Source of the DNA: Octopus sinensis | Lineage: Eukaryota | Length of the DNA: 64,000 nt | Direction: 5' to 3' | NCBI RefSeq assembly: GCF_006345805.1 | Contig: NC_043012.1 | Location: 36,642,001-36,706,000 of the forward strand | Shown: positions 2,201 through 54,104 of the stretch, in pieces | Numbering within the stretch: the first letter of the stretch is position 1 | Layout: each line of letters opens with the position of its first letter | Position numbers and translations under genes: made by a program | The notes under the pieces: model-generated | What the model saw: the letters and a program-made list of their open reading frames with translations, nothing else | The model's database searches: none | Told to the model about the DNA's origin: nothing

Positions 2201-2224
2201 CTCACAAAGGATTTGGTGAGTGAT

Positions 2225-4629: not shown

Positions 4630-5100
4630 ACCTCCTTGAATTTCTCCCTGGGCAGTTTCTCCCTCATCACTCCCTTCCACTTGGAGATTCTCCTCTCTCC
4701 ACATCTACACTCTTTTGGTAGAAGATTATGAATGCCTTATTTCTATATCTGTGCTTCCACCGATTCCCTGCGACCGCTCTTCCTCCCTCCCTCCGACCGA
4801 CAAACCCGTCACTCCCCCATCGCCCCCCCTCCCCGTCCTCACCTCCGCATCTCTGACGCACACGTCATCTCTCCCGCCATCTCCGTCTCAACTGGCACAC
4901 CAACCTCCGTTTCTTCTTGGTCCTCTCCCACAGCCTTCCCACTCTGAGGAGGCTTGCGCCCTCACACGGCCTCCTAACCCACACTCGCAACAACTGGGTC
5001 GACGACCCCCAACAACCACCCTGAGGGAACCCCCTTCCGCAATCTCCATCTGGTAGGGGATCCCCTCAATGTCTTCGAAAGCGGTAAAAAGCATACCCTA
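4630..5100 (-). mobile_element. Degenerate LINE ORF1-like fragment with a decayed zinc knuckle
   Basis: Minus translation IPYQMEIAEGGSLRVVVGGRRPSCCECGLGGRVRAQ resembles ORF1 CCHC-knuckle regions of non-LTR elements. The block is GC-rich and frameshifted. Confidence 0.45.
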
Positions 5101-5189
5101 ACCCTAACCCTACACTGCATGTATTTTATACAATACGCTAACGACTTCGCGAATTTACCGCCTTTCAATCCATTCACCCACCTGTCTCA

Positions 5190-7020
5190 CTAGAAGTAGG
5201 CATCCGTCGGTCTCGAGAGGCTTTGGGCCTGCGCCCTCCTTCCAATCGTGTCAGGTGCGGCTGGTGGTGCAGTGTCTGTTGTGGCTGTACAGGCCCACAC
5301 GGGAGTGGAAGTCACGTATACAGCGACTGTATTTGAAGGAGTTCTCTGTCGGTGCCCCTGATTTTCCCCTTCCGTCGAGTGAGCTTTTCTTTGATAGCGA
5401 GGACGTGTTTTGCTCCCGCTCTCTTCATTCCCTTTTGCAGCATTTTCTCCCAGTCTGGGCAATCATTTGCAATCTCCTCATATCTCAGGACGTCCAGATC
5501 AAGTGACTTCACATCTCTCTTACAGACGTCTTTGAAACGAAGATGAGGTCGTCCTCGTGCTCTTGTTCCGGTCGCCAATTTCCCATAGAGGAGGTCTTTT
5601 GGATCCTTCCGTCTGGCATGCGATGAACATGACAGAACCAGCGCAATCGACGTTGCTGGAGCAAGATGTGTGTGCTGGGAATCTTGGCTCGGTTGAGGAC
5701 TTCAGTGTTGGTGATGTGGTCGGTCCACTTGATGTCCAAGATTCGTCTCAAATTACGAAAGTGAAAGACGTTGAGACGCCGCTCCTGTCTGGAGTAGAGG
5801 CTCCACCTCTCACTGCCATTAAGTAGCGTACGAAGGACGCGCGCCTTATATACAGCAAGTCAGGTGTTTGCAGCCAGTTTCTTTTGTTTTCCCAGACTCT
5901 CTTTGTGAGCCTGGCAAATGTGGGGGGTGTTTATCCGATTCACTTGTTGATCTTAGGATCAAGGGAGAGGTCATCAGCGATGGTAGAGCCGAGATACGTG
6001 AATTGATGGACTACCTCCAGCTTGTAGTTGTTGATGGTAATGGCAGGGGCGTGCTTTACACTTTGACCCATTACTGGAGTCTTCTTCAGACTGATAGTCA
6101 GGCTGAATTCCTGATAGATCTTTGAGAGTTTGTCCACGACGTGCTGCATTTGCTCTTCAGAGTGTGCTGTCAAGTGCTGTATCGTCTGCGAACAGCATTT
6201 CTCCGACACACTTTGGATTTTGCTTTCAACCTCTGTGAAATGATTGAACAATCCTGAGATGTCTTGGAGGACAACCAATCTTGGCAAGGATTTTCAACAG
6301 GCCGTCTCTACTGATTAGGTCAAAAGCCTTTGTGAGGTCGATGAAGGTGATAAAGAGTGGTTGTCTTTACTCTCGGCACTTTTCCTGTAGCTGTCGGAGA
6401 GAGATCGATGGTGGAGCGTGTTGCTCTGAAACCACGCTGAGATTCGGGGTATATCCTCTCAGCGATTTTCTGTATCCTATTTAGGACCACGCGGGCAAAG
6501 ACTTTTCCAACGATGCTTAACAGCGAGATGCCTCGGTAGTTATAGCAGTCGCTTTTGTCTCCTATGTTCTTAAAAAGGGTGACAATGTTGCTATTCAGAC
6601 CCGGTTCCAGTGGACAGACCATCAATGGCTCTGCTCAGTTCTTCAGCAGTTGGCAGTGCGTCCAGCTCCTCCGTGACGGGTGGGTGCTGTACGATGTCTA
6701 GCGCACTGTCCGAGATGTTCTTTTCTTTGGCGCAGTGTTCGGACTAATGTTCCACCCATCTCTCTCGCTGCTCTCTTTTGTCCCTGATAACTTCCCCTGT
6801 TCTGTATTTGAGTGGAGCTACCTTGCTCTGGGTTGGGCCGATGGCTTCCTTCATACCCTCATACATTCCATGAATGTTGTCTGTAGCAAACGACAGTTGG
6901 ATATCTGCGTATAGTTGTAACCAGAAGTCATTTGTACATCGCCTCACTGTCTTCTGCATGCTTTTCCTTGCTGATCTCAATGCTTGCAGCGTTGCCCTGA
7001 TGGGTTGTCTCACTACAAGC
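5190..7020 (-). mobile_element. RTE-clade LINE ORF2 (reverse transcriptase) remnant, frameshifted and internally deleted
   Basis: Fragmented minus ORFs: IVTLFKNIGDKSDCYNYRGISLLSIVGKVFARVVLNRIQKIAERIYPESQRGFRATRSTID; ISLKKTPVM...LEVVHQFTYLGSTI; RRILDIKWTDHITNTEVLNRAKIPS...QRRLRWFCHVHRMPDGRI; RGRPHLRFKDVCKRD. Confidence 0.9.
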
Positions 7021-7089
7021 TTATCTGTCTGCCTGTCTATCTTTATCAATCAATCAATCAATCAACCAGGCACTGGCTAAACTGCCACT

Positions 7090-7115
7090 ATCTTATCTAA
7101 CTATCTATCTGTCTG

Positions 7116-7195
<80 letters not shown>

Positions 7196-7220
7196 ATCTA
7201 TCTGTCTGTCTGTCTACCTG

Positions 7221-7307
<87 letters not shown>

Positions 7308-7308
7308 G

Positions 7309-7378
<70 letters not shown>

Positions 7379-7395
7379 AATCAATCAATCAGATG
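7090..7395. repeat. (TATC)n/(TGTC)n microsatellite
   Basis: About 300 bp of near-perfect tatc repeats. Confidence 0.95.
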
Positions 7396-7701
7396 TTAGC
7401 TAAACTATCGATCTATCTACTTACCTATCAAACACTGACTGAACTATCGATCTATACCTATCACCTTATCAATCAAACGCTAGCTAAATTATAGATCTCT
7501 CTACTTCTGTACTTCTACTGTTACTCAAATAATCTGATTGAACTTAGTATTAAGTCACCTGTTACCCTGAAGGTGAGACCCATATAGAAAGGCATACAAG
7601 CCATATCACCTCGAAGACTATATTGACGTACCCCCTCTTTCCTTAAGGCGGGTAGAGTTCGATTTAAAGGAGATATATTTTATTTATTCTTTATATCACT
7701 A

Positions 7702-8103
7702 CCAGCAGTATCGCCCGGCGTTGCTCGGGTTTGTAAGGGAAATAACTATATAAGCATTTTCAGAGAGTTATAGCCAAAAAATAGCAAAAAAATGCATTAA
7801 AAATGGAAAAAAATGATGGTAAATTTTTTTAAAAATCGTTGACTCATCGTAGACATTTTTAGAGAGTTACTTCCTTTATATAATAGCGAAAAAAATGCAT
7901 TCAAATGGAAAAAAATGATGGTAATTTTTTTTTTAAATCGTAGACTCATCGTAGACGCGCGCTAATACCCAGAAGGGCTCGATATGAATCACGACTATAA
8001 GATACCCGGTTTTGGTTACACTGCACCGCAAAATGTGGGAGTAGTTAGGAATCTAAATCGTAGGAGACAGACAGACACACAACTTGACTTTTATATATAA
8101 AGA
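7702..8103 (-). mobile_element. Non-autonomous Helitron (about 400 bp)
   Basis: Reverse complement of 30832-31228. On the minus strand it starts TC(TTTATATATAAAAG) and ends with hairpin CCCGAGCAACGCCGGG followed by CTGG (variant of CTAG). Confidence 0.8.
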
Positions 8104-9524
8104 TTAGTGAACAATAACGTCGTTTGTCCAGAACCAATAACTGGTTCATTGCTTTTCTGCCGGTAAGAGTAAGACAACATCGATGTAGACCAAATATCTT
8201 AAGGGACTTCTTTTGTAAAGCACCGGGTTTTAGGTTTTCTCGCCGATGTTTACACAATTCCTTCAATTAACAATTTTCTGTTTCCACTTGCAACGAATTG
8301 ATTAATCCGAAGCTATGATAAAAGACACTTGCCCAAAGTGCCACGTTGTAGGACCGAACCCGGAATCACACAGTAGCTAAGCGAACTTCTTACCTCCCAC
8401 AGCCATGCTCATACTGCTATTTCTAGCAGGTCGAATAACCGGGTTAAGTTCCCTTTCATAAACGGAGAGAAAAACATTTTTTTCTGTTTGTTTTGAAGGG
8501 ATTATTTCTACTCTTCATACATACATTCTCTCACACACACATGCATTGTTTCTTTTTACACACACATCGTCTCATATATTCTCTTTATCTTCCACACACA
8601 TATTTTCCCATGTACTTACATATACTCTCTGTCATTCATACATTCTCTCAAGTCCACTCAAATAGGGTCTCATACATACATTGTCACTCGTACACATTAT
8701 CTGCCAGTGTCTTATACATACACACTCATATATTGTCTCATACGCACACATTGTTTCTTCTACACTCATTCATACACTTTCTACCCCCCTCTTCTCTCTT
8801 TTTCACACTCTTGTAACGAAAGAATATTTTAGTGAGTTTTCAGGGTTGACGGTTGAACGCTTCAAGAAACAAAAAAAAAAAAAACCGAAAAACACCAGAA
8901 TAAAAATAAAAATCGTCGGCGGGATTCCCCCTCCCCGCACCCGTAAATAAATATTTATGTCTACAAAAAAAATAAAAAGAAAAAAGTGTATCTGCTTTGT
9001 TTGTTTAATTTTAGCCGACCCAGGCCATCATTAAATTCTGCTTCTCACTTCCTAGCAGCTGTGTGACCGGAAAACGACTGGGGGCGCCTAACAACCACAG
9101 GGAAGGTGAAAACACGCATGAGGGTGAAATAGTGACACAGTAGTTTAGTGAAGAGGTGAAGAGAAAAGAACAAACAAAAAACATACTAGTTGTACTATAT
9201 TTTAACTTTGATTTTAAACTTAGCATAGAAGTTAGTTCTCCATCGAATTTTTACACTTTGTAGTTTATTAATCTACCGTTATTTTCCTAGACTTTAACGT
9301 ACTTTTTCAACGACACAACAACCTGAGTTTATTTATTTTAACTGAGATTTCTCTCTCTCCACCCCAGTCAGATTTTTACTTCCTTCCACTCAACATAGAC
9401 TTTCCTTAAGATCGTGGGGGTTGTCTATTATGTTTGTGTATTATACGTGTTGTAAAGACAATCACATGTCCTCAGAATATTGAACATAATAAATATTGTA
9501 AGACATTTGGGTACCCAGCCAGTC

Positions 9525-9815
9525 ATGGAAATAATAAAGAGTCCGTTTGGAACAGATATGATCATTTTCAGAGATTATATTTATAGAAAAGATAAAGCCA
9601 AGTTGAATACCATGTACTGGCGATGTGTTAAAACGAATTGTAAAGGGAGATTGGTGAGCATTCTGGATTATAAAGAAAAAAACGTGGAAGAAATTCAACT
9701 GAAGGTCAGAGGTCAGCATTCTCATCCTCCTGATCCTGTGGATGTGAAAGCAAGGAAAGCATTAATTGAAGCGAAGTCAATTTTGAACTGCCACGAACTA
9801 CCCAGAAACGAAAAG
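9525..9815 (+). CDS. FLYWCH zinc-finger first coding exon V1 (97 aa, Mutator-transposase N-terminus-like), ends at phase-0 donor
   Basis: MEIIKSPFGTDMIIFRDYIYRKDK...MYWRCVKTNCKGRL...GQHSHPPD has the WxC-x4-C...HxH pattern. Donor AAG|GTAACC at 9816 (weak), after which the ORF runs into poly-T/poly-A intron-like sequence. Confidence 0.75.
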
Positions 9816-12619
9816 GTAACCGTCATTCGACTTAAATATTGTTTTTTTTTTTTTTTAGCAAAAAAAAAAAAAAAACTTTCGAAATATATTTCAGCTTCAA
9901 AATGATATTTATTTATTTTGTCTTTATTTACAAAACATTTTTTTATTTATAAAGTATATATTTAATAGCTGAATATGTATATCTGATAGACACACTCAAC
10001 TGTTTCTCTCTCTGTCTGTCTGCCGGTTAAATCGGTAGAAAGTTACAAAAGTGACTCTGGGGCCGACATTTTCGTGCAAACACATTCTCCAACCGACTTT
10101 AAATCTGAGTTTGTTTCTTTTTTGTCAATCGAATCATATTCTTTTGCTGTTGGTGAACTGCAGCCTTCCTATGAAACCTAGTGACTTCTTCTATAGTTTG
10201 GAACTAAGTATATCGATCTGTATTTGTAGAACCGGTTAGTTGGACACCAGATTAACAACAGCGATTTGGTTTTGAAAACCCTTGTAAACATTAACCACGC
10301 ACACACACACACATTTTCAATTTTTTTTTTTTTTCATATATACCGTCTGTTAAATTCCATCATTATAGTGCCCCGTGTAAAGTGCCGCGCAGTGAGATCG
10401 AACCCCAAATCTCGGTGTTGCAAAGCGAACTTTGTAACTAAACGGCCATAAATGCATATGGGCGGAGGTAAAGAATACGCGCCCCACCCGTTTTCGGTGT
10501 AACCCAAACCGCCGAAAACGGGTGGTGTATACTATTTATCTTTTACTTGTTTCAGTCATTAGACTGCGGCCATGCTGGAGTACCGCCTCCAAGAATTTCT
10601 TGTCGAACGAGTCAGACGCTTTCGGAAATTCCCGATGTGAATTTTCCGAGGCCTCTCCCCCATTCCCTTTTCGCGTGCGCACATTTTTTTTTCCTATTCG
10701 TTTAGAGGAAGTTGTTTTACACACGTTTTTTTTTTTGTTTATATACGATGGGCTTCTTTCAGTTTCCATCTACCAAATCCACTCACAAGGCTTTGGTCGG
10801 CCCAAGGCTATAGTAGAAGGCACTTGTCCAGAGTGTCACGCAGTGGGATTGACCCCAGAGTCACGTGGTTGGGAAACTAAATTCTTACCATGTGAATTTT
10901 CCGAGTCCCCACCCCCGTTCGCGAGCGCGCATTTTTTTTCATATTCGTTTAGAGCAAATTGTTTTACACGTATACTATTTTTCTTTTGTTCTTTTTTGCT
11001 CGGGTCAAGCGCTTTAGTTTAACCTGAAAGGCTTTTATAAGTCAATACTGTATCCTACTGTTTGTGGTGTTAGCAGTGCTATATATAGTTGTTTACAAGA
11101 CAGTGATTGTTGGTACCAAGTTCTATTCAAGTCCAGGCCCCTAAGGACAGTTGGTTCTTGTAAACAACTGTCCTTAGACAAAAGACTGACTTTTCATTGA
11201 CCAGTGTTTACTCATCCCATCTTCTGGTGTGGAGGATTTCCCGCTCCTTGGTACCAACAAGTTCTTATTCATTTCAGTCGTAGATACACAAGCGTTAAGT
11301 TGTCTGTCTATCTCTCCACATCTCTGTCCGTCCGTCCGTCTATCCATCCCAAAAATTGGTATTTTTTAATGAAATACCATTCAGACTGCATAAATTACGA
11401 TTATATCGGAATTTAATGTGGAAAAAAAAAAATGTTAGGCGCACACACGTACATACTGTTATATTCGTCATATTTATTACAGAATCTTGAAATTCTGAAC
11501 ACATAAAATGTGTGTGTTAGTATGTATGTGTTCACACCAACCTGTTTTTTTCCTTCTTTCACATTGAATCCTGATATGATCGTAATCTATACACACGCAC
11601 GCACATGAAGTCTGTTTTTTGACCATCGTGTCTCGTCACTTGTCGCGATTATTTCCTTCAGGAGGTTTCCCCAATTTCTTGAAATCAGCTCTCTTCGTCC
11701 ACTTTCCCCTTATATTTTCCCAATTTGCAGGTTCCTTCCATTGGAATCACTTGCCAATATTCTAACCAGGCGCCACCCCGTTCCACACACATCACGTCAC
11801 AGAACCAGTGCAGGCTTCTCTCTTGCACGTTACATCTGATTCCATGAACCAACGCGGTAGCCTCTATATAGTCACTCGACGCGCTAGAAACAGCAGCCAA
11901 ATCTCTCTCAAATTAACATCGTTAGCATCCTAAAAGATCGAACATCTTGATTAATGGAGTCTTGGGTTCCTTGCTTATAGGAAAATTACTGGATGGTCAC
12001 GGTTGGAATGTCTGTGATCATTGGTTTGTTCAATCAGGGCTTACATAGGACTATAAACCATAACATTCAATTAGTCTTTCCCTGACCCGTTATTCACTTT
12101 CTCTGTAATGTCACCGTACTGGTGTTTATAAGAAATACAGATTTTATCGCATGTAATCCTTTCTCGGACAGATATATCCATCAGAATGGTCGAATTTGTT
12201 TCCGCCTTAAATAATTCCAATCTCGTGGAAACATGCCATGTGTAATAACAATATCTTTTCTTTCTGAAACGAATTGTTTTAATTGCTTTTGTTGTTGAAG
12301 GGTCTGCGATATCTGCTCCTGTATCAGTTATTATTAAATCAACAGCTATTTATTAACAGAGTTTTAAATATCATTCACAACAGATGGATTGACTTAGCTT
12401 CCTGAATGAGGAACTGCCTGGTAACACCAAGAATGTCCTTTTTACATGCATTAATAAGAGAACATTTACGTGGTAAATATTCTTTAAACCCATTTTGACG
12501 TACGCGATTATTCTGCCAGTGTTTCCATTTGATTGTGGATGATATAGGGGTGTTTTCGTAGGTCTACACCCAGTTTTAACGAAGCCAGATGCTCGAGTTT
12601 ATTAATTATGAAATTCACA

Positions 12620-12895
12620 GACATTGCCAAGAAATCCGCCAACTTATCGCCGCCAATTCAGCGCGGAGTCAAGTTAGCGGTAAACTAACTCATCGCCTCA
12701 ATTAATTTACTTCAAAAATTGAAATTCATAGAGGTGAAATGGAATGGAAAAAAATACCTTTATTTAAAGAAATGGAATGTTAATTAAAATATCCTATTTT
12801 ACTAAAGTATAAATGTTTAAATCACTGGTTCGCTACTAATTCATCGCCGCCAATTCATCGCGAGCCAAGTCGTCGCTAACAAAACTCATCACCGA
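12620..12895. repeat. Short dispersed subrepeats aa(c/t)tcatcgcc, Mutator-TIR-like remnant upstream of V2
   Basis: Five near-copies: aacttatcgcc, aactcatcgcc, aattcatcgcc, aattcatcgcg, aactcatcacc, in two clusters. Confidence 0.45.
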
Positions 12896-13085
12896 ACCAC
12901 TTCATTATCAAACCAAATAATTACTAATCAGACTAAATTAACAAATTACAAGTTAGCTAATTATCAATTTAAATGTGACAGCGTTTACTTATTTACTGTT
13001 CGACGCTGGCAACTTCGGTTCATGCAATTAATTTAGAACTGTTTGAGCTACGGTTGCTTAAATTTCTCAAGGAGGCCCCTTCACA

Positions 13086-13394
13086 ATGGAACGTGTTTTC
13101 AGTCAGCGAGGCAAAGAGAAGTTCTCACACGATGGCTATTTGTTTATATTTGATAAATTTAGTAGGACCGACACTGACTTAATGTTTTGGCGTTGTGAAT
13201 TAATCGGCAGATGTAAAGCAAGAATTCACACAAAATTTGGCGATGTTGTGAAATTTATGAATACTCACACACATGATTGTTCACCAATAAAGGAGGTAGT
13301 ACAAATGGCCAGAAAAACGAAAAGCTGCTCTCGGAAGTCAATGGAAAGTCCAAATATAGTAATTGATGAAATATTGGGCAGTGTTTTCCGACCG
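13086..13394 (+). CDS. FLYWCH zinc-finger first coding exon V2 (103 aa), ends at phase-0 donor
   Basis: SQRGKEKFSHDGYLFIFDKFS...MFWRCELIGRCKARIHTKFGDVVKFMNTHTH is a classic FLYWCH of the MULE-transposase type. In-frame TAA at 13059-13061 lies upstream of the ATG. Donor CCG|GTAAGC at 13395. Confidence 0.8.
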
Positions 13395-14489
13395 GTAAGC
13401 ACTTAAAATAAGCATTTTTCCTTCTATATTTCTATGTACATAATAATTCTTTCTAATTTTGGCTCAAGGCCAGCAATTTTGAGAGGAAGAGAAAGTCAGT
13501 TATATCGATCCCAGCGTTAAGCTGGTACTTCATTTTATCGACCCAAAAGGGATGGAAGGTAAACATTGATTTCGGCAGGATTTGAACTCAGAGCCAGAAG
13601 AAATACTGCTAAGTACTTATGTCAGATGCGCTAACAATTCTGCCAGCTCACTGTCTTAATAATATATATATATATTTTTAATAGCAATTAAGCATAAATT
13701 AAATGAGTGGGAATTGAACCGGTATGTTAAATTAAGGCACTGTGACTCTCCACATACAACAAAGTTTGTTTCAACACACGAATTCACACAAGGAATCTTG
13801 CAAACCAGATACAAAACATTTTATTATTTTAAATAAATTTGTTTTCATTTCCAGTGGAATAATTTGAATAATTTCAGTATTTAAGTGTGAAGTGATGAAA
13901 TGGTTTGTGAAAAACTTGCTTGGCGCTGACAAGTTTTCCACGAATAGTCGTCTCAGCTTGTTTTCATACACAAAATGCTCCAAGAATGTCATTTCTGAAA
14001 GAAATACAGTTCTTCATAGCTCCTTAACTCATTCTCTTTCTTTATTCTTTATTCTTAATAGTTAATTCACCCAGAGTATCAGTAGCGTAGCTTGGGGTAG
14101 AGTGAGCCGCCCCTGGCGACGGTTTTCGGAAGGGGAGAGAAGAAACAATTTTGGGGATGACCTTCCTAATGCTAGCAACTTTACATCATCATCATCATCA
14201 TCATTTAACGTCCGCTTTCCATGCTAGCATGGGTTGGACGGTTCAACTGGGGTCTGGGGAGCCCGAAAGCTGCACCAGTCCAGTCAGATCTGGCAGTGTT
14301 TCTACAGCTGGATGCCCTTCCTAACGCCAACCACTCCGAGAGTGTAGTGGGTGATTTTATGTGCCACCGACACAGGTGCCAGACGATATATATATATATA
14401 TATATATATATTAATCAAAATAAAAACATGATGCCAAGGATGTTTTTATTTTGATTAATTTACTCCACCACCTACACCACCAAACGGTA

Positions 14490-15040
14490 TATACAGGTGC
14501 TTATAATTATCAAGTACTCACCCTGAATTTCTGTACCCAACTATATATATATATATATATATATATGGGTTCTCCTGCTTGTGTGGCATGGTACAGAGTC
14601 CTGTTGTCAGGTATAGGGTCTTCCAGCAGTCATCTTGACCCAGGGCAGCACTTCCTCCTTCAGGCACTTGAGGTAGGTCTCCGTGTTGAGTGCGAGGCCG
14701 TGTTGGAAGATAAATGGAAGCATGTGTCATCACTGGTGATCACTCCAAACACCATGATGTTGATTGGGTGTTTGATTTTTATCACTCTTGGTACATGTCC
14801 TCAGATTGACACCCAGACACTCTGAAATGTTCATATTGGAGCTTCTGGCTTGAATGCCATGCACTACAACATGTTTCCAAAATTCTGGCAGAGTGAATTG
14901 TGTCATGGTGCTGTTTCTCTCACAGACGGTGCCCAACTGACCCTACTGTACTGTGTAATCGACAAAATAAAAAACAAACAATGCGCATGCTCAAAATTAA
15001 AAATATAAAATGGCAACAATTTACTCATCGCACCTTGTAT
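14490..15040 (-). mobile_element. Internally deleted Tc1/mariner (maT-like) element remnant
   Basis: Minus frame gives FIFQHGLALNTETYLKCLKEEVLPWVKMTAGRPYTWQQDSVPCHTSRR, a DD-domain segment. Ends ta-caggtgc / gcaccttg-ta resemble imperfect TIRs. Confidence 0.65.
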
Positions 15041-15169
15041 ATGTATATATATATAAGTATACACAAAACATAAAGAAGAATGAATAATTATACATCTTCA
15101 AAAATTATTTATTATTCCCAAAATAGGGATAATGCTGTAAAATCCATATTGGTATCAAAATCTATACCA

Positions 15170-15400
15170 GCCCCTGTTCCCAAGGTCCCAGCTATCCCGT
15201 CTAGATTCAAGGGCACACAGCTATTTAACACCTGATGGATCTTCATTGAGTAGGGGGAGATGTTTTCAAGAAACAACTTGACCTCCTGCTATCCAAGCTT
15301 TGGATATTAACCTAAATCAAGGCAGGAACCTCAAAAGAGGGCAGCAGTGTTGAACTCCCTCCTTCAGCAAAAGCCAATCACATATGATTGGCCATTGAAA
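15170..15400 (+). mobile_element. CR1/L2-type LINE 3' end remnant
   Basis: Degenerate SRFKGTQLFN...DVFKKQLDLLLSK...SRQE...RAA-like reading. Confidence 0.45.
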
Positions 15401-16139
15401 GGGCTGAAAGGTATAAAAGAATTCAAAGAATTTACTTCCAATCCAATACGTGTTTCTGCTGGATAAATGCCTTAATGTCCTTTGACACAGTATTTAGGTG
15501 CATTTAGTTGGTTCAGGCGCAGTAAGTATTCATCCAAGGTAAACTATTCCCATGTAGCTTTGTCCATGTTCAAAGAACATGGATACAACCTGTTAACCCC
15601 CAATTTTATTTCTCTTTTTAATATTTGATAAGATGGATACAATCGAAACCGGTTATATTTTAAATCACTCACAAAAATATCAAACATTCTCTAAAATATA
15701 TTTTTGTGCCTTTTCCAACTTTATTTACTTTTTTAACCAAAATTCTTGATTTGTATGAACTCTTAACCCCTTTTCAACTATATATATATATCTGGCTCCT
15801 GTGCAGGTGGCACATAGCATGGCTGTTGCCAGTACCGCCTGACTGGCCCCCGTGCCGGTGGCACGTAAAAGCATCCACTACACTTGCAGTGTGGTTAGCA
15901 TTAGGAAGGGTATCCAGCTGTAAAAACTTTGCCAGATCAGACTGGAGCCTGGTGCAGCGATCTGGTTCGCCAGTCCTCAGTCAAATCGTCCAACCCATGC
16001 TAGCATGGAAAGCGGACTTTAAACGATGATGATGATGATAATTGGGGGAGAGGGATTCTCATCCAGATATCCAATTAAGTTATACAAGAAGGAATCATTC
16101 CTAATAACTGGCATTGCAGTATCATCATAAACAGTTATC

Positions 16140-16340
16140 AATGTAAAGGAGATGTCTTAGAGAGAAGTAACTATTTAGGAATCAGACTATTGGATCAGAT
16201 TATGAAGGTCATGGAGAGAGTTAGAGCTCAATTGATTTGTGACAAGATTGAGCTAGATGAGATGTTGTATGGCTTCATATCCAGAAAAAATACCACAAAT
16301 GTAATCTTCCTAATGAGGCAACAGTAGGTGAAATGTTTGG
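16140..16340 (+). mobile_element. RTE LINE reverse-transcriptase remnant
   Basis: Decayed KGDVLERSNYLGIRLLDQIMKVMERV...LDEMLYGFI...TTNVIFLMRQ motif containing stops. Confidence 0.7.
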
Positions 16341-16939
16341 CTCAGAGCACAGTAATAGCTTACTTTATGGGGACCCACTCTACGAGACCCTGGGTTTACG
16401 AGCTTTATTTTATTATAAATTTTTCTAGGACAAGATCCAAATTTTGAACCAAGTGCAAAAGTTTCTACTGCCATAACAAGTGCTTCTGCATATTACTGAG
16501 AAATTTATTGAGAGCAAATAAAAGCTTCTTCTAAGCAAACAACTCTACACTTGATTTTTAAGAAAGAGATCTACAAGTCTGTCTATGAGTGCTTGTGAAT
16601 CTGCAATCACATCTCCAAGTGATGGTGTGCATGTGTCTAGTGCGAGTGAAAGTGGTTCAGAAAATGGTTATAATAATATTTTTAATTATAAGTGGTCTTG
16701 ATATTCTTTTTGCTTTATATAAAATAATCTTTACATTCTACTGTTATTCTATTGCCATTTATTTATGAGTATTATAAATTTTACAGGTAAAATATTTTTC
16801 TGGGAACGAATTACGATTTATAACATTGCTACTATGGGAAATTATTGCTCTGTTTTACGAGTTTTTTGCTTTATAAATGACCTCCAGGAACAAATTAACT
16901 TGAATATTGAGGCATTGCTGCGTGTGCGCGCGTGTGGTG

Positions 16940-17045
16940 TCACTGATTTTTCCCAGTCGCATTTTCCCAGCCGACATTTCCTAGTCACATTTTCGTAGCC
17001 GACATTTCTCGACAGCAGTTTTTCTCCCAGCAAAACTACTTTAGA
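16940..17045. repeat. Tandem 14-15 bp subrepeats (ttttccca/ta-gccgaca), Mutator-TIR-like remnant upstream of V3; related motif at 10060-10100
   Basis: tttttcccagtcgca ttttcccagccgaca tttcctagtcaca ttttcgtagccgaca tttctcgaca; gccgacattttcgt also occurs near 10062. Confidence 0.5.
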
Positions 17046-17366
17046 CAATATTTTCTGTTTTTGTTTGCAATAATTCTATGAAAATTATAATTAAACACAA
17101 GTAATCAATAAGGAAATGGATTACATGACGGGAAATGTTTTTTCGTTATGTTTAATTAAGGCTGTAAATTAATTATTTTCACTGTAAAAAGGTTATCAAA
17201 CAATTAACTTCACAATTTCTCTTTATAAAATCGTCAGAAGATTTAGAAATAATAGCGATAAATACTATCAAGTTACAAAGTTTGGTTCTTTTAGTAATTG
17301 CTTCCAGGAATATTCGAGAAATATTCGTTTGCTATAATTAAGTATTAACAAATTTTATGCTGGAAT

Positions 17367-17729
17367 ATGGACAACAGCATTTCATATATCTCGAGTATCA
17401 GAGGCAAGGAAAAAGCTTGCAACAACGGCTATGTCTATGGGTTTGACAAGAAAAGCAAGCTGGACAACCAGCTGTTCTTTTACTTGTGCGAGAGACAAAG
17501 ATACGAGCAATGTCCAGCGAGGATCCATGTGAAACACGACACGGTGGTCAAACGCATGCATCTACACAACCATGTTCCAAACAGACCAAGGAAAAAAACC
17601 TTGAAAATAGCTTCTGGGATCAGAAGTCATGCGGCCGTGGCCGCGGCGGACCCGATGATGAATGCCATCGTGGCAAACAGGACAACCAATATACCACCAG
17701 CCTCTCTTGCAGCAGCAATGAGACCAAAT
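17367..17729 (+). CDS. FLYWCH zinc-finger first coding exon V3 (121 aa), ends at phase-0 donor
   Basis: SSIRGKEKACNNGYVYGFDKKS...FFYLCERQRYEQCPARIHVKHDTVVKRMHLHNH retains all four Zn ligands (W replaced by Y). In-frame TAA at 17346-17348 has no AG between it and the ATG, so this must be a first coding exon. Donor AAT|GTAGGT at 17730. Confidence 0.8.
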
Positions 17730-18036: not shown

Positions 18037-18227
18037 CAGTGCTTTTCAACCTTTTTGCTGGAACGGAACCCCAAGAAAACATTTCACAGGCTCGAGGAAC
18101 CCCTGTGCAATGATTTAATTGTCTTATCTGCACAGGAGAATTAAAAATTACTGTCGATTTTAGCATTTTTGTAACTTCTTGCGGAACCCCTGGACTGTCC
18201 TGGCAAAACCCTGGTTGAAAACCACTG
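18037..18227. mobile_element. hAT (Charlie-like) MITE, copy 1
   Basis: TIR cagtgcttttcaacc / ggttgaaaaccactg; 8-bp TSD agatagac/atatagac. Confidence 0.85.
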
Positions 18228-18551
18228 ATATAGACACACACGTAGATGTGTTTATATATACATACATGTGCGTGCGGCTGTGGTGGTCTCTCTTGGCTGG
18301 GATATCGATCGCTGGGAAAAGCGGCTGGGAAATGTGTTACGTTGTGTGTGTGTGTGAACATTTTATATTGTCGAGAGAGATTCTTGGTTTTGGCATAATC
18401 GGTCTGGTTTTCTTTTAGAGTGTATCCTAGTTTTTCCTGACTTTATAGACTAACTGATCACACACGCGCACGCAAAGGTGTGTGTGTGCGTATATAATTT
18501 CATTTACGTACCTGGAAATTCTACGAACAAATTCTGTTCATCGTTTCAATA

Positions 18552-18620
<69 letters not shown>

Positions 18621-18640
18621 GTCGTTTTGTTGATATAGAC

Positions 18641-18841
18641 CAGTGCTTTTCAACCTTTTTGGTAGAACGGAACCCCAAGAAAACATTTCACAGGCTCGAG
18701 GAACCCCTGTGCAATAATTTAATTGTCTTATGCACACATATCTGCACAGGAGAATTAAGAATTACTGTCGATTTTAGCATTTTTGTAACTTCTTGCGGAA
18801 CCCCTGGACTGTACTGGCAAAACCCTGGTTGAAAACCACTG
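18641..18841. mobile_element. hAT (Charlie-like) MITE, copy 2 (part of a tandem duplication)
   Basis: Same TIRs; perfect 8-bp TSD atatagac on both sides. Confidence 0.85.
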
Positions 18842-19169
18842 ATATAGACACACACGTACGCAGATGTGTTTATATATACATACATGTGCGTGCGGCTGTG
18901 GTGGTCTCTCTTGGCTGGGATATCGATCGCTGGGAAAAGCGGCTGGGAAATGTGTTACGTGTGTGTGTGTGAACATTTTATATTGTCGAGAGAGATTCTT
19001 GGTTTTGGCATAATCGGTCTGGTTTTCTTTTAGAGTGTATCCTAGTTTTTCCTGACTTTATAGACTAACTGATCACACACGCGCACGCAAAGGTGTGTGT
19101 GTGCGTATATAATTTCATTTACGTACCTGGAAATTCTACGAACAAATTCTGTTCATCGTTTCAATATTA

Positions 19170-19202
<33 letters not shown>

Positions 19203-19488
19203 CTTGTGTGTATATATATGTGTGTGTGTGTGCTTGTGTGTATATATATGTGTGTGTGTGTGCTTGTGTGTATATATATATGTGTGTGTGTGTGTGTGCT
19301 TGTGTGTATATATACATGTATGTGTGCGCGCGAGTGTGTATGTGTATACGAGTTCCTTTTTATGTGTTCGTTTGTGAGTGCTTGCATCGACGTTACTCTG
19401 TATATATGAGTGTGTGTGTGTGTTTCGTTTTACATCCGTTTTTCCACAGTAGTTATATATATATATATATTTCATAACTTTATTAATA

Positions 19489-20187
19489 CAGTCAACTCTC
19501 GCGCTACTTTGCCAGTTTTGCGCGGTCCCGCTCAAATAATTAACAAAAGATTTTTTACTATGCCACCTTCAACTCTCGCTACTATGTCACTTGTAAACTG
19601 AAGCGTACGCAACTTTTCGAAATTTTGTACATTTCATATTTGTAATCTTGTGGAAAAGTTCAGAAAGTGGCACACAATGTCAGCTCAGAAACGCAAGCGG
19701 ACTGAGTTTACGCTGAAGGAAAAGAAGGAGATTATCGATGCTGCGAAAAACGAGCCGAACCAGTCTAAGCTGGCTAGAGAAATGAGCAAGAAATGGGGCA
19801 TCGAAGTCAAGAGGACCACGGTGAAGGGCATTCTCAACAGAAAGGATGCAATCGAGGCAGCCATCAACGTTGGAATTCCATGGAAGTGCACGAAGCTGAC
19901 GCAATCTCACAACCCGAAGCTCGATGATGGCGGGCTAATGTGGCTGAAACAAGCAAGAGGACAGAATCTGCCGGTCAGTGGTGATCTTTTGAAGGAGAAC
20001 TTAATAAATTTGGAAGTCTTCTTTTTACCATTGCATTGAACTTCTTATTGGCCTTACTTCCTACCCTGTGAATTTTTATTCGTATGTTCAGTAAATTTTT
20101 GGTTATGTAGTGTTTAGATAACAGACCCTCGGTACTATGCCACTTTGGCTCAGTCCCGCAGGGTGACATAGTAGCGAGAGTTGACTG
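19489..20187 (+). mobile_element. Internally deleted Tigger/pogo element retaining the CENP-B-type HTH DNA-binding region (ORF from ATG 19677)
   Basis: TIRs cagtcaactctcgc / gcgagagttgactg flanked by TA. ORF RKRTEFTLKEKKEIIDAAK...QSKLAREMSKKWGIEVKRTTVKGILNRKDAI...HNPKLDDGGLMWLKQARGQNLPVSGDLLKE matches pogo/Tigger HTH domains. No DDE domain is present. Confidence 0.9.
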
Positions 20188-20271
20188 TAGTGACTTCGAA
20201 TACCACTTTCAAGTGTGTGTATATTTTTATATGACTACGTGTATGTGTTATGCATGTGTGCATATATATGT

Positions 20272-20302
<31 letters not shown>

Positions 20303-20414
20303 ATATATATATACGCACAGATGCGCATGTACTCAAGCATATATATATGTGTGTGTGTGCTTGAGTATGTGCACATAAGTGTGTGTATAGCTTATTTAAA
20401 GCAACTTCAATAAG

Positions 20415-20818
20415 TCAGTTCTATATTTAAGAGACGAGGAATTATGTACATTATTTACATTTGACAGATATTTGTCCTCATCTTGTTTGTTGTTAACACA
20501 ACGTTTCGGCTGATATACCCTCCAGCCTTCATCAGGTGTCTTGGGGAAATTTCGAACCTGGCATATGGCATAGTGGTTAAGAGCATGGACTACTAACCCC
20601 AAGATTCCGAGTTCGATTCCAGGCAGTGACCTGAATAAAGATAATAATAATAACAATAATAATAATAATAATAACAACATCGAAAAATACCTTAGGAATG
20701 AGAACCCAGGTTCGAAATTTCCCCAAGACACCTGATAAAGGCTGGAGGGTATATCAGCCGAAACGTTGTGTTAACAACAAACAAGATGAGGACAAATATC
20801 TGTCAATTGTAAATAATG
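20415..20818 (+). mobile_element. tRNA-headed SINE with Penelope-type hammerhead-like tail and an inverted 5' copy of the tail
   Basis: 12-bp TSD aacttcaataag (20403-20414, 20819-20830). tRNA-like A box tggcatagtggtt and B box gagttcgattcc at about 20565-20620. An inverted repeat of about 110 bp spans 20450-20560 and 20706-20818. Confidence 0.75.
20495..20540 (-). ncRNA. Minimal type-I hammerhead ribozyme-like motif (Penelope-type)
   Basis: Minus strand GACAC CUGAUGA A GGCUG-GAGGGUAUAU-CAGCC GAAA CGUU GUGUU gives stem I, the core, stem II, GAAA and a palindromic ACGU stem III. The + copy at 20727-20772 has CUGAUAA (core mutated). Confidence 0.55.
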
Positions 20819-21788: not shown

Positions 21789-21887
21789 AATGCTAACTAC
21801 AGCACCAGAAAGAAACTAAGCAAATCTTCAAGAGCAAAACCCATTTCTGACTTGGATCCTTTCAGTTCCGAAGTTAGTAAAGTAAAG
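21789..21887 (+). CDS. Internal coding exon A (99 nt, phase 0/0): NANYSTRKKLSKSSRAKPISDLDPFSSEVSKVK
   Basis: Acceptor tttcatatttttgcag|, donor AAG|GTAAGC. Only the phase-0 frame is open; the other two frames stop within 30 nt. Confidence 0.6.
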
Positions 21888-22563: not shown

Positions 22564-22680
22564 CAATATAGTCATTTCAACCGAAGAAAGAAAGTGACCA
22601 AATGTCCAAGAGTGGAAAATATAGAAATGTTGTCCACCCCTGTCACGGCTCCCTTCATTCATGAAGTCACTGAATTCAAG
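22564..22680 (+). CDS. Internal coding exon B (117 nt, phase 0/0): QYSHFNRRKKVTKCPRVENIEMLSTPVTAPFIHEVTEFK
   Basis: Acceptor ctaatatatttcag|, donor AAG|GTAAGC. Open in phase 0 and similar in motif layout to exon A. Confidence 0.6.
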
Positions 22681-32763: not shown

Positions 32764-33981
32764 ATGTCGGATGTAGCTGACTCAAAGCCATTACCGTCTT
32801 CGCTTACGCAATCCTTTATGAATGACTTCAACGCTGATATTGTTAGCAGAACCAAAAGCGATAAAAATGTTCTGTTAGTTGCAGATGATCCCCCTCCTGC
32901 AATGAATTCTATAAACTTCATAAACCTAGACGAATGCAACCAGCTGGCTGGTTCGAGGAACACTAAACGGGTCACCGCCAGTTCTGTTAAATTGTTTCGA
33001 GCCTTTTTAAAGGAGACCAATAATGGAAGGACTGATTTTGAAAATTTTGATGAAGAAATCCTTATCAATCATTTGATAACTTTTTTTAAGCGGGTAAGAA
33101 AACCAGATGGTGATCTCTATACGAAGAATGGTTTGCTGTCAATTCGTTTCGGACTCAGAAGGCGCTTGTTAGACTTACGTAAAGTTGATATTACTAAGCA
33201 CCCTCACCTTAATTCAGTTTTTACTGCTCAGATCAATAAATTGAAACGAGAAGGCAAAGGAGATATAAACCATTACCCTCCCATTAGTCACGATGACATG
33301 TTCAAAATTTATAGTTCAGGGATTTTGTCACCCGACACGCCGAAAGGGTTGTTAAGGAAGATTTTCTTTGAAACTGAAATGTTTTTTTGTCGACGAAGTA
33401 GAGAAAACCTAAGGGATTTGAAAGGAAGTCACTTTAAAATTGAAACCGACGATCAGGGCAAAAAATATTTGACCACAGATTTTGATCCATCATTTGGTGG
33501 TGGACCAATCAAACGGATTTATGAAACTGGCACAGACATATGTCCCGTGAAAGCTTTCCGCAAGTTTTTGCTGAAACGTCATTCTAGCTGTGAGGCGTTA
33601 TTTCAACGTCCCGTGGATATAATTCCGTTTTCTGAGCAGGATCCTTGGTTCCATTGTTCAGCTCTCGGCCTCAATAAACTCGCCAACATGATGAGAGAAA
33701 TTTCTTCAGAAGCCTGCCTGTCCAAGATATATACAAATCATTCCATAAGAGCTACTTCAAAATCGGTCTTTGATCTCGTCTGGAACGGGCTCTTCTCGCA
33801 GAATTCAGCGAATCCAATAGCACCTGCCTCTAGTGAGATCAGCAATATTAGTGACACAACTTCTGTTTCAAGGGAGAAGCCAGGGCAGCGACGGCCATCG
33901 TCATCTCGAGGAAATGAAACTGATATCGATTTGAAATCGAACTTAGACATACAAGAAATTGAAAGGAAACACGCCCCTGTG
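32764..33981 (+). CDS. Crypton-derived DUF3504 tyrosine-recombinase-like first coding exon V4 (406 aa), ends at phase-0 donor
   Basis: DGDLYTKNGLLSIRFGL...PPISHDDMFKIYSSGILSPDTPKGLLRKIFFE...FFCRRSRENLRDL...YETGTDICPVKAF...LFQRP...LSKIYTNHSIRATS resembles the DUF3504 domains of KCTD1/KIAA1958/ZMYM-type proteins as I recall them. In-frame TAG at 32728-32730 lies upstream. Donor GTG|GTGAGT at 33982. Confidence 0.85.
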
Positions 33982-52928: not shown

Positions 52929-54104
52929 ATGGCCGACCCTCCGTTCGTTGGAGACCTCAATACATCTGCTGTAGATGGTGGTTTGTACCTCACAACAGCG
53001 TTGAACAACGAAGAATTTGAAGGTTTATTAACGAAAGACTCAAAGTCCAGTCAACAGGCTGAGAAATACGCGGTGTTGAAATTCCGTCACTATCTGACCA
53101 AGCGAGGTGAACCATTGTCTTTGGAGAATTTGTCCTACCATGTGACCAGCGGTGACATGCCTGCCAAGGAGCGACTGCTTACCTACCTGACCACCTTCTT
53201 TAACGATCTCAGACGGACTGATGGCAGCAAATATAAATTCAATGCCCTCAGAAGTATTCGTTACGCCTTAAATCGCTTTACTTTGAAGTTTGGAGTTGAT
53301 TTTCTCAACGATGCTTATTTGAAAAAACCATTAAATGATGCATGGGTAGCGTTAGGCGAATGCCTGAAGCTGGAAGGGAAAGCCGATGTCCAGCATCACG
53401 ATATTCTATCGTTGGAAGAAGTTAAGAAAGCATATGCCTGGTGTAATCAAAATCTTTCTGATCCTGATCGACTCCAAAAGAGAGTTTTTATGGATATTTA
53501 CCTCTACTTTGGACGCCAGTGCCGACAGAATTTACCACACCTGACCAAAGATAATTTCGGCATGGACGTCGATGCCAACAACCAGCGTTATGTTTACTTT
53601 ATCGACAAAACCGGCGACACAACCCGTAAAAGCAACACCCAGTTAGTGATGAAAGAACGCGTGGGATTTGCTAATTGTCCCGTAAAGATGTTCCTGAAAT
53701 ATGTTTCCAAATTAGACCCTCATTACCCGCGATTCTTCTGTCATCAAAAGCTAAACGTTGACCCGCTCTACCACACGGTTTGGTATACAAAACAGCCGAT
53801 GGGCGAGAAGAGAATGGCCGAGTTTATGAAATCCATTTCGAACGACGCCGGTTTGTCTAAAGTTTACACAAACCATTGTTTGCGTTCCACGCTGCTGTAT
53901 CTAATGGAAGAAGGTGGGTTGGATGCTAAGGATGTCAGTCGAATAACTTGTAGTCAATCATCTCACGAAGTATCCATACCCGAGGTCCCTTCACCAGCAC
54001 AACGTCCCTTACAAACACCACACGCCGCCGCCGCCACTACAAACACGTGGCCCTCCTCACATTCTGGCACCTCACTTCACTCTCGGAATAAAAAATCATC
54101 TCAG
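52929..54104 (+). CDS. Crypton-derived DUF3504 tyrosine-recombinase-like first coding exon V5 (392 aa), ends at phase-0 donor
   Basis: DGSKYKFNALRSIRYALNRF...DPDRLQKRVFMDIYLYFGRQCRQNL...NCPVKMFLKYVSKL...PMGEKRMAEFMKSISNDAGLSKVYTNHCLRST. ATG context caaaATGg; in-frame TAG at 52902-52904. Consensus donor CAG|GTAAGT at 54105. Confidence 0.85.

Follow-up and report, generated by a model that had tools for sequence, protein, structure and literature searches.

The 64,000 nucleotides of Octopus sinensis DNA analysed here (hereafter the window) very likely represent the 5' part of LOC115220336, a BTB gene equipped with transposase-derived alternative first coding exons (Table 1). The product of this gene is labelled "uncharacterized protein" in RefSeq and, as far as could be found, its multi-start organization is annotated yet apparently undescribed in the literature.

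The peptides encoded in the window by six variable exons (V1-V6) and two common exons (C1 and C2) exactly match the RefSeq isoforms XP_029646296-301, which are Gnomon predictions (XP_ proteins), and all the junctions of these exons are canonical (GT or AG) and in phase 0. V1, V2, and V3 constitute the exact N-termini of XP_029646301.2 (P0160; donor AAG/gtaacc, the slash marking the exon boundary), XP_029646299.1 (P0155; donor CCG/gtaagc), and XP_029646298.1 (P0162; donor AAT/gtaggt, kept in three species), respectively. A preliminary description of the locus had read each of these exons as being cut off by a phase-0 donor, and it is indeed there that isoforms X6, X4, and X3 are joined to C1, with the junctions ...PRNEK/NANYS for V1, ...VFRP/NANYS for V2, and ...MRPN/NANYS for V3. 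The C1 peptide (NANYSTRKK...SKVK; acceptor tttttgcag/, donor AAG/gtaagc) is exact and common to isoforms X3-X6, and the C2 peptide (QYSHFNRRKK...TEFK; acceptor atatttcag/, donor AAG/gtaagc) is exact as well. Past the window, the constant body comprises a coiled-coil region, a BTB/POZ domain (43.6 bits with Pfam; best PDB matches gigaxonin, KLHL3, and BACH1), and a long low-complexity tail, the remaining gene body being located downstream in O. vulgaris. In the independently annotated O. bimaculoides, the orthologue LOC106879774 displays the same isoform set minus V4, and its gene record begins 8.9 kb upstream of V1. Besides, in-frame stops are present 21-78 nt 5' of each V-exon ATG, which prevents translation from running through one V exon into another and makes them mutually exclusive, and each annotated isoform in these two species contains exactly one of them. 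The protein collections gave genomic ORFs only for the V exons, a spliced contig not being found there. The gene models of the two species support the view that one BTB gene really has V1-V3 as alternative first coding exons and that these are conserved.

Table 1. Exons and conserved block of the 5' part of LOC115220336, in window coordinates.
Feature	Description	Position	Strand	Length and phase	Isoform or remark
V1	Alternative first coding exon, FLYWCH and short helix	9525..9815	+	97 codons	X6
Block 5' of V2	Conserved block	12990..13085	+		Candidate promoter, 5' UTR or acceptor region
V2	Alternative first coding exon, FLYWCH and post-FLYWCH helix	13086..13394	+	103 codons	X4
V3	Alternative first coding exon, FLYWCH and long tail	17367..17729	+	121 codons	X3
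V4	Pogo/Tigger-type transposase N-terminus, CENP-B_N helix-turn-helix	19677..19973	+	99 codons	X5
C1	First common exon	21789..21887	+	33 codons, phase 0-0	Acceptor for V1-V4
C2	Second common exon	22564..22680	+	39 codons, phase 0-0
V5	First coding exon, DUF3504 (Crypton tyrosine-recombinase-like)	32764..33981	+	406 codons	X1
V6	First coding exon, second divergent DUF3504 copy	52929..54104	+	392 codons	X2

V1, V2, and V3 each run on the plus strand from an ATG to a phase-0 GT, and their assignment to the FLYWCH family holds with the Pfam model (PF04500, cut-off 23.6 bits), which gives 38.3 bits for V1 (E 1.5e-9), 49.5 for V2 (4.9e-13), and 47.7 for V3 (1.8e-12). A six-frame HMM scan of the window detects no more than these three copies. 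Direct reading confirms that the four zinc ligands are kept in each of them, as C-x4-C...HSH in V1, C-x5-C...HTH in V2, and C-x7-C...HNH in V3. In the AlphaFold model of V2 (mean pLDDT 65), residues 2-58 form a beta-sheet and residues 68-87 a helix. The block immediately 5' of V2 is nearly invariant among three octopus species, whereas identity drops to 84-87% farther out in the flank, where indels occur, and acceptor-like AGs are conserved immediately 5' of both V2 and V3. The preliminary description had missed the BTB gene context, the three further transposon-derived starts, and the probable separate capture of V2 and V3.

A Mutator origin had been put forward for all three exons: it is supported by full-exon homology to MULE proteins for V2 and V3 and weaker for V1, whose best matches are 31-44% identical and not clearly MULE. 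A FLYWCH+MULE protein of the catshark Scyliorhinus canicula (XP_038653015.1; P0017) matches residues 1-100 of V2 with 64% identity over 101 aa (E 1e-50). V3 likewise matches P0172, a FLYWCH+MULE protein of 475 aa, with 49% identity over 122 aa (E 1e-35), the alignment covering residues 4-125 of the read-through frame, i.e. four residues beyond the donor. The presence of MULE domains in these relatives arises from precomputed or scanned Pfam matches. As for the segment following FLYWCH, said to resemble that of MULE transposases in both exons, the V3 tail alone matches its counterpart in a MULE protein (E 9e-6), while for V2 the tail by itself gives no significant match to P0017, and its homology is carried by the full-length alignment. 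V2 and V3 are thus collinear with the first 100-125 residues of FLYWCH-MULE transposases (XP_038653015.1, P0172, P0055, P0005) but, unlike in these proteins, no transposase C-terminus follows in the window, and homology ends at most four residues from the splice donor. The reported lack of a MULE DDE domain after the copies holds window-wide, since tblastn with eleven FLYWCH-MULE proteins yields nothing significant past their first ~100-125 residues. High-copy, near-identical derivatives of the V exons were not seen in the protein collections.

Judged by its sequence, the locus is a host-transposase fusion with starts from three transposon types. Transposons in sense orientation would have landed either inside the 5' intron of a BTB gene that already existed or upstream of that intron, and the inserted transposase ORF would have been spliced in, following the host-transposase-fusion route. 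V1-V3 would then represent the first ~100-120 residues of a MULE transposase, i.e. the FLYWCH finger and a helix, a GT at a codon boundary of each having become the donor to C1 with loss of the catalytic part, V4 would be the end of a pogo-type transposase that carries the helix-turn-helix, and V5 and V6 would be Crypton-like DUF3504 modules. As BTB is a dimerising, cofactor-recruiting domain, the locus would give rise to a set of regulators that differ in their DNA or partner specificity and, by analogy with known systems, each isoform may put a different targeting module on the same BTB scaffold. If so, regulator diversity like that of Drosophila mod(mdg4) and lola would be reached via 5' instead of 3' alternative exons.

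DNA targeting by the V exons is nevertheless not assured, because the FLYWCH domain of Mod(mdg4) can mediate protein interaction: in Drosophila, Mod(mdg4)-67.2 is recruited by Su(Hw) through its isoform-specific C-terminal FLYWCH domain, which mediates this specific association (PMC5666082). It is conceivable, albeit rather unlikely, that the octopus exons were domesticated as partner-specific protein-interaction modules, each isoform being recruited by a different DNA-binding partner, and the fast evolution of V1 and V3, whose protein identity between species is 77-85% compared to 96.5% for the constant part, would fit co-evolving partners. However, V2 and V3 are still near transposase N-termini, and the N-terminal WRKY/FLYWCH-type finger of MULEs is the module that binds the element ends. 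In addition, the zinc ligands and the FLYWCH core are strongly constrained, and other starts of the locus, such as the CENP-B_N helix-turn-helix, belong to classical DNA-binding families, which argues against this alternative.

Whether the FLYWCH exons were captured independently or duplicated locally had been left to a phylogeny. In neighbour-joining trees, the only ones built and based on ~110 columns, an exclusive V1+V2+V3 or V2+V3 clade is found in none of 200 bootstraps, and this absence of clustering favours separate captures, suggesting that V2 and V3 come from different MULE families. Derivation of V1-V3 from one captured FLYWCH exon by tandem local duplication and later divergence appears improbable, even though the three exons share their orientation, a spacing of 3.3-4 kb, the layout from ATG to phase-0 donor, and one acceptor, V1 has no close MULE relative, and the short alignments make the trees weak. 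Indeed, V2 shares 64% identity with a MULE protein but only 38% with V3 and 24% with V1 (24-25% for V1 versus either of the two others), while V3 shares 49% identity with another MULE and has in common with it a tail motif (ANRTTNIPPASLAAAM versus ANKTAGLPPA-VAAAM) that is absent from V2. Besides, the three intervals show no residual similarity to one another except for dispersed repeats, and the locus demonstrably took in the unrelated pogo and Crypton transposon domains.

Separate captures being preferred, the fate of the captured exons can be followed in related species. In O. vulgaris, O. bimaculoides, and another octopus (species X), the orthologues of V1-V3 are all intact: their ATGs and donors are kept, and they show in-frame indels only and no frameshifts, the flanks being rich in indels. 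Purifying selection, as initially proposed, is in agreement with the dN/dS estimated between Octopus species, which is 0.29-0.48 for the pooled exons, with no bootstrap replicate reaching 1. More precisely, dN/dS amounts to 0.18-0.54 for V2 overall and 0-0.22 in its FLYWCH core, and to 0.24-0.41 for V3 overall, with 0.10-0.35 in the core and 0.4-1.2 in the tail, which is almost neutral in one comparison (omega 1.2); V1 is under the weakest constraint of the three (0.32-0.71 pairwise, with confidence intervals including 1). Between O. sinensis and O. vulgaris, 7 of the 963 exon bases differ, one of them nonsynonymously, and the exons diverge by 0.7% but the flanks by 1.7% (Fisher p=0.018), V1 showing 0 substitutions next to flanks that are 1.8% different. 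These comparisons support the domestication of V1-V3 under purifying selection. That the V exons are neutral transposon relics, linked as chance ORFs to a neighbouring BTB gene by artefactual isoform models, is very unlikely: although splicing is backed by predicted (XP_) models only and the metagenome contig L005 carries a degenerate MULE derivative whose finger is V2-like, the ORFs, ATGs, and donors are kept in four genomes while the flanks gain indels, and a dead insertion would not be expected to show, at fixed orthologous positions, a dN/dS that is clearly lower than 1. Moreover, the six variable and two common exons all have canonical sites and compatible phases, each exon occurs once per sample in five resequenced species X individuals, and the adjacent LINE reverse transcriptase is frameshifted, unlike the V exons, a difference already pointed out in the preliminary description. 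On the minus strand of the window, at 4400-8200, RVT_1 profile positions 3-54 and 53-108 lie in two different frames and are interrupted by stops.

It is scarcely credible that V1-V3 are consecutive internal exons of a single multi-FLYWCH protein comparable to human FLYWCH1, since, despite the many library matches with 4-15 FLYWCH units per protein and the acceptor-like AGs 5' of V2 and V3, stops lie in frame 21-27 nt 5' of the V2 and V3 ATGs, a phase-0 acceptor was not found inside the V2 and V3 open frames, and the annotated isoforms of two species have one V exon each.

As mutually exclusive first exons of a BTB gene, V1-V6 recall several known systems. At least 30 isoforms are produced from mod(mdg4), whose alternative exons mostly encode a FLYWCH finger (PMC11426971, PMC5666082). 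The octopus gene is like mod(mdg4) and, by analogy, lola in that the BTB body is common and one alternative exon varies, and it shares with mod(mdg4) the pairing of BTB with FLYWCH and of a constant oligomerisation module with variable specificity modules. However, the variable module is N-terminal in the octopus gene (first exons with donors), whereas mod(mdg4) uses alternative 3' exons, some of which are trans-spliced; the octopus BTB is of the generic type and not of the Tramtrack group, which is arthropod-specific (PMC11426971); and the octopus array mixes three transposon-derived domain families rather than being limited to FLYWCH. This reversed order, generic BTB, and mixture of families indicate that the resemblance is convergent and not homologous.

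Transposase capture by alternative splicing has been documented in tetrapods, with a transposon-supplied acceptor upstream of the transposase ORF in 8 of the 9 traced cases (Cosby et al., bioRxiv 10.1101/2020.05.07.082677). As in these fusions, a transposase DNA-binding domain is spliced in frame to a host regulatory domain at the octopus locus, at an orthologous position, under purifying selection, and together with other host isoforms. In contrast to them, the transposase would provide the start codon and a donor within its ORF, the partner is a BTB domain, and six captures from three superfamilies would be gathered at one invertebrate locus. The tandem array of first coding exons in one orientation, joined to the same downstream acceptor, is also reminiscent of protocadherin alpha/gamma and UGT1A, except that the octopus exons are transposon-derived and unrelated or barely related, and are not duplicates of one another. 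FLYWCH, CENPB, and THAP factors have been reported in Lophotrochozoa, most Octopus CENPB factors being associated with BTB/POZ (PMC10027918); the accessions and peptides of the locus were not found in the supplements examined of this survey, and it gives no description of the multi-exon architecture of LOC115220336.

Finally, V4, V5, and V6 constitute the exact N-termini of XP_029646300.1 (P0158; donor CCG/gtcagt), XP_029646296.1 (P0177; donor GTG/gtgagt), and XP_029646297.1 (P0167; donor CAG/gtaagt), respectively. V4 reaches 21.8 bits with Pfam CENP-B_N (cut-off 21.2), while V5 and V6, with 26.4 and 28.9 bits, stay under the DUF3504 cut-off of 29.7. O. bimaculoides has neither a counterpart of the ~19.2-21.3 kb segment that contains V4 nor a V4 isoform. 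The acceptors are two-tiered, C1 serving V1-V4 and a later exon serving V5 and V6; V5 skips C1 and C2 and joins the next common exon, outside the window. In the comparison of V6 with O. vulgaris, all 10 of the 10 substitutions are synonymous.

The three FLYWCH exons V1, V2 and V3 are alternative first coding exons of one gene, LOC115220336, in which a single BTB body is combined with six transposon-derived modules that serve as alternative N-termini and are conserved and constrained. This gene was reached when 1.84 billion representatives were searched with a profile and without a word index, which returned P0013 (XP_014784960.1), the 680-aa isoform X4 of the O. bimaculoides orthologue LOC106879774; when the V exons were used as queries in word-indexed protein searches, the result had been short genomic ORFs only, the RefSeq isoforms not being among the matches. 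The first 103 residues of P0013 correspond to V2 with 92% identity, and the following 72 map to two common exons, C1 (33 codons) and C2 (39 codons), which were recognised only via this protein, the listing of + strand open segments being uninformative. The cluster of P0013 contains the complete isoform sets of O. bimaculoides, O. sinensis and O. vulgaris, and the window peptides are identical to the O. sinensis RefSeq isoform proteins.

Features of the window (slash, exon boundary; isoforms and junctions according to the RefSeq models; scores in bits)
Feature	Position	Strand	Isoform	Start and splicing	Domain or remark
V1	9525-9815	+	X6	ATG start; donor AAG/gtaacc; to constant part via C1	Pfam FLYWCH, 38.3
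V2	13086-13394	+	X4	ATG start; donor CCG/gtaagc; to constant part via C1	Pfam FLYWCH, 49.5
V3	17367-17729	+	X3	ATG start; donor AAT/gtaggt; to constant part via C1	Pfam FLYWCH, 47.7
V4	19677-19973	+	X5	donor CCG/gtcagt; to C1	CENP-B_N
C1	21789-21887	+		acceptor tttttgcag/; joined by V1-V3 at the donors predicted in the preliminary description	common exon
C2	22564-22680	+		next after C1	common exon
V5	32764-33981	+	X1	skips C1 and C2, to next common exon	DUF3504
V6	52929-54104	+	X2	skips C1 and C2, to next common exon	DUF3504
Segment around V4	~19200-21300				~2 kb
Block upstream of V2 ATG	12990-13085				~100 nt
Adjacent copies	18226-18582, 18840-19206				both align to O. bimaculoides L015 27345-27715
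ORF pair	47783-48160, 48817-49194	-			1034 nt apart
Decayed LINE-type remnants	4400-8200, 1717-2520	-			RVT_1 pieces in two frames, 25.9 and 24.4

All V-exon junctions are in phase 0, with canonical and phase-compatible splice sites; C1 is the common acceptor of V1-V4, and the common exon that follows C2 is that of V5 and V6. Since the ATGs of V1-V4 are each preceded, at a distance of 21-78 nt, by an in-frame stop, the V exons are not readable in series and represent mutually exclusive coding starts. The remaining 505 residues are encoded beyond the window end, and map in the O. vulgaris locus L014 to 4-18 kb past the point matching this end. Among them are a coiled coil rich in glutamine, a BTB/POZ domain (43.6 bits) and a long tail rich in serine. 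The BTB domain is internal (residues ~300-420 of 674-698), has gigaxonin, KLHL3, KLHL26 and BACH1 as its best solved relatives and is of the general dimeric type. The predicted isoforms thereby place three FLYWCH alternatives on a single BTB body, and, in these models, a transposase-derived domain is spliced in frame to a host domain, as in host-transposase fusions.

Other arrangements of these exons do not survive. V5 and V6 have their own ATG and no upstream acceptor and could have been independent single-exon genes, which isoforms X1 and X2 rule out. In the same line, the view of V1-V3 as tandem genes with their own second exons is superseded by the isoform models. A serial multi-FLYWCH protein is ruled out by the upstream in-frame stops together with the absence of a phase-0 acceptor, the open frame of V2 having none. 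Comparison of the three V intervals by blastn and tblastx revealed dispersed and simple repeats only, the V exons themselves (24-38% pairwise identity) being too diverged for tblastx.

The preliminary description had presented V1-V3 as Mutator transposases cut off by a splice donor, whose DNA-binding part had been domesticated. In terms of the finger itself, this was borne out: all three exons exceed the gathering threshold of Pfam PF04500 (23.6 bits), and the zinc ligands are kept (C-x4-C...HSH in V1, C-x5-C...HTH in V2, C-x7-C...HNH in V3), including in every orthologue. A profile built from the three exons also matched the human FLYWCH1 domain structure 2rpr, and the AlphaFold model of V2, which is of moderate confidence (pLDDT 65), places six strands within residues 2-58. 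Each frame ends, as proposed, at a phase-0 donor with the GT at a codon boundary. No FLYWCH copy besides V1-V3 was found in the window by a six-frame scan with the three-exon profile. The contrast with decayed retroelements drawn at that time also holds, the reverse-transcriptase frames at 4.4-8.2 kb on the - strand being shifted and broken by stops, with profile positions 3-54 and 53-108 in different frames. The RVT_1 pieces of the decayed LINE-type remnants score just under the Pfam cut-off.

Conservation was evaluated with orthologous DNA from O. vulgaris (L014), O. bimaculoides (locus L015) and a third octopus, species X, of which several individuals had been resequenced (Logan runs SRR11869384-94). 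In all three, the ATG, the donor and the open frame of V1-V3 are kept, as expected for the domesticated exons previously postulated; indels are multiples of three only and all fall within V3, and the flanks show 82-88% identity and numerous indels. By the method of Nei-Gojobori, the pooled dN/dS of V1-V3 amounts to 0.48, 0.29 and 0.29 for the three pairs, with confidence intervals below 1 and no bootstrap replicate reaching 1, in agreement with the purifying selection that had been proposed. Taken separately, V2 shows values of 0.18-0.54 (0-0.22 in the FLYWCH core), V3 of 0.24-0.41 (0.10-0.35 in the core and 0.4-1.2 in the tail), and V1 of 0.32-0.71 with confidence intervals that extend to 1. 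O. sinensis and O. vulgaris differ at 7 out of 963 sites in V1-V3, only one of these changes being nonsynonymous and none lying in V1, as against 1.7% in the flanks (p=0.018). At the protein level, O. sinensis and O. bimaculoides share 84.5% identity in V1, 92.2% in V2 and 76.7% in V3, the constant part evolving more slowly than any of them (96.5%). Besides, each V exon occurs once per sample in species X, and no high-copy family of V exons was visible in the sequence collections searched. When orthologous positions are fixed and constrained in this way, selection at the level of the host is indicated and not transposon activity.

Regarding the origin of the fingers, tblastn of 11 FLYWCH-MULE proteins against the window, introns included, gave no significant match to any part of these proteins after their first ~100-125 residues, which confirms the reported absence of the MULE DDE domain (PF10551). 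V1-V3 are thus not autonomous MULE transposases, as the catalytic domain is missing and the exons end at donors. A Mutator origin stands for V2 and V3, whose nearest relatives are FLYWCH+MULE proteins, but is less well supported for V1, whose best matches are only 31-44% identical and include an ostracod BTB-FLYWCH protein and a Littorina multi-FLYWCH protein. The nearest non-orthologous relative of V2 is a catshark (Scyliorhinus canicula) protein, P0017 (XP_038653015.1); over 101 residues, which take in the whole exon except its last three codons, identity is 64% and similarity 85%. This identity is unexpectedly close given such distant hosts, and may reflect horizontal spread of the MULE family among marine animals. 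The nearest relatives of V3 are the FLYWCH+MULE proteins P0172 (475 aa)/P0034 and P0046, with 47-50% identity over 115-122 residues; the tail of V3, in which ANRTTNIPPASLAAAM aligns with ANKTAGLPPA-VAAAM, reaches an E value of 9e-6 on its own. Since this alignment extends four residues beyond the donor, the GT of the V3 donor lies inside the former transposase ORF. The MULE domain was confirmed in P0017, P0034 and two further relatives, P0055 and P0005, and is narrowly under the cut-off in P0046; the MULE-bearing samples are SRR6854726, SRR25569784 and ERR14657290. A metagenome contig of 914 nt (ENA, ZHAN22-2; L005) carries a V2-like FLYWCH finger, 80% identical over 200 nt, which contains an in-frame stop and is fused directly to a MULE C-terminal region, and apparently represents an internally deleted, decayed MULE derivative.

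In a neighbour-joining phylogeny of 117 FLYWCH units, based on a short alignment with 200 bootstrap replicates, the orthologue groups of V1, V2 and V3 are supported at 91%, 99.5% and 100%, respectively. V2 groups with P0017 and another relative, P0025, in 52% of the replicates, and an exclusive clade of V1+V2+V3 or V2+V3 appears in 0 of 200. Because their nearest MULE relatives are separate and no exclusive V clade is seen, separate captures of V2 and V3 from different MULE families are favoured. As V1-V3 were inserted before at least three octopus species diverged, the element ends have probably been eroded.

The other variable exons derive from other elements. The CENP-B_N domain of V4 is the helix-turn-helix of pogo/Tigger transposases, and reading through its donor gives 'VSGDLLKE', as in pogo transposases; the donor GT is therefore a former Val codon. 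No remnant of the pogo transposase (DDE) was visible after V4 in the three frames read. The segment around V4 is without counterpart in O. bimaculoides, where the V4 isoform is also missing, so that V4 was either captured later, in the lineage of O. sinensis and O. vulgaris, or lost from O. bimaculoides. Just upstream of this insert, the adjacent copies at 18226-19206 stem from a duplication that took place locally in the lineage of O. sinensis. V5 and V6, whose DUF3504 domain resembles Crypton tyrosine recombinases, are about 30% identical to each other, and V6 differs from its O. vulgaris counterpart by 10 synonymous and 0 nonsynonymous changes. In the cuttlefish orthologue model P0169, this same BTB is preceded by an N-terminal part that resembles DUF3504, which suggests that the DUF3504-BTB form is older and that FLYWCH starts were added in octopods. 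On the - strand, the ORF pair at 47783-49194 has identical 125-aa translations, a sign that a repeat-rich segment within the large intron was recently duplicated in tandem.

Splicing-based transposase capture is well documented in tetrapods, and alternative FLYWCH exons arrayed in a BTB gene are known from arthropods only. By analogy with tetrapod host-transposase fusions, in which a transposon inserts into a host gene, is spliced and then comes under selection (10.1101/2020.05.07.082677), the octopus isoforms could have arisen by a similar route, with the difference that the tetrapod transposon supplies the acceptor, whereas here it would contribute the ATG as well as a donor within its own ORF. 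A cephalopod would thereby have reached the same outcome independently and in the opposite way. The BTB domain would provide dimerisation and cofactor recruitment, each N-terminal module would steer its isoform to distinct DNA sites or partners, and isoform heterodimers could combine specificities. A bolder and rather unlikely proposal is that the locus works as a protein-level transposon trap, the DBD-BTB isoforms binding the ends of their parent families (MULE, pogo, Crypton) and silencing or immobilising them. Sense insertions of DNA transposons in the 5' region would then repeatedly become new first exons, and V4 would be a recent acquisition, still seen as presence/absence between octopus species. 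If true, such a trap would be the cephalopod equivalent of the defence by KRAB zinc fingers or piRNA clusters.

Among known systems, the Drosophila BTB gene mod(mdg4) has 30 or more alternative FLYWCH exons (PMC11426971, PMC5666082), and constant BTB exons are likewise combined with multiple alternative FLYWCH exons in the octopus gene. Nevertheless, the variable exons of mod(mdg4) are 3', some being trans-spliced, and its BTB is N-terminal and of the Tramtrack group, whereas those of the octopus gene are 5', form an array of mixed domain families and precede an internal BTB of KLHL/gigaxonin/BACH1 type. For these reasons (internal, non-Tramtrack BTB; 5' variable exons), the octopus gene is a convergent analogue and not a member of the mod(mdg4) type, mod(mdg4) being, by analogy, its closest functional counterpart. 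The joining of variable first exons to the same constant acceptor, as by V1-V4 to C1, also recalls Pcdh and UGT1A. A survey of transposon-derived factors in metazoans refers in general terms to FLYWCH in Lophotrochozoa and to BTB-associated CENPB in Octopus (PMC10027918); the accessions and peptides of the octopus isoforms were not found in those of its supplements that were examined. The gene is already in RefSeq, with these isoforms, as an 'uncharacterized protein', and the literature search found no paper that mentions LOC106879774, nor any name or description of the gene; the present analysis provides a name and a rationale for this entry. With at least four to six captures from three transposon superfamilies at this single gene, one of them missing in a sister species, the captures form a natural series of graded age, from recent to old, in which one can test how new isoforms of transcription factors arise and whether their first action is against their parent transposons.

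Finally, each V exon may have a promoter of its own; but the O. bimaculoides gene record starts 8.9 kb upstream of V1, and a shared non-coding first exon, perhaps lying outside the window, is therefore possible. Ahead of V2 and V3 there are conserved AGs that resemble acceptors. The block upstream of the V2 ATG is nearly invariant in three octopus species and more conserved than the tail of V2 itself, and may be a promoter, a 5' UTR or a splice-acceptor region. Further upstream in O. bimaculoides (L015 1-4852, - strand), the neighbour is a gene for a PHD-finger protein on the opposite strand to LOC106879774.
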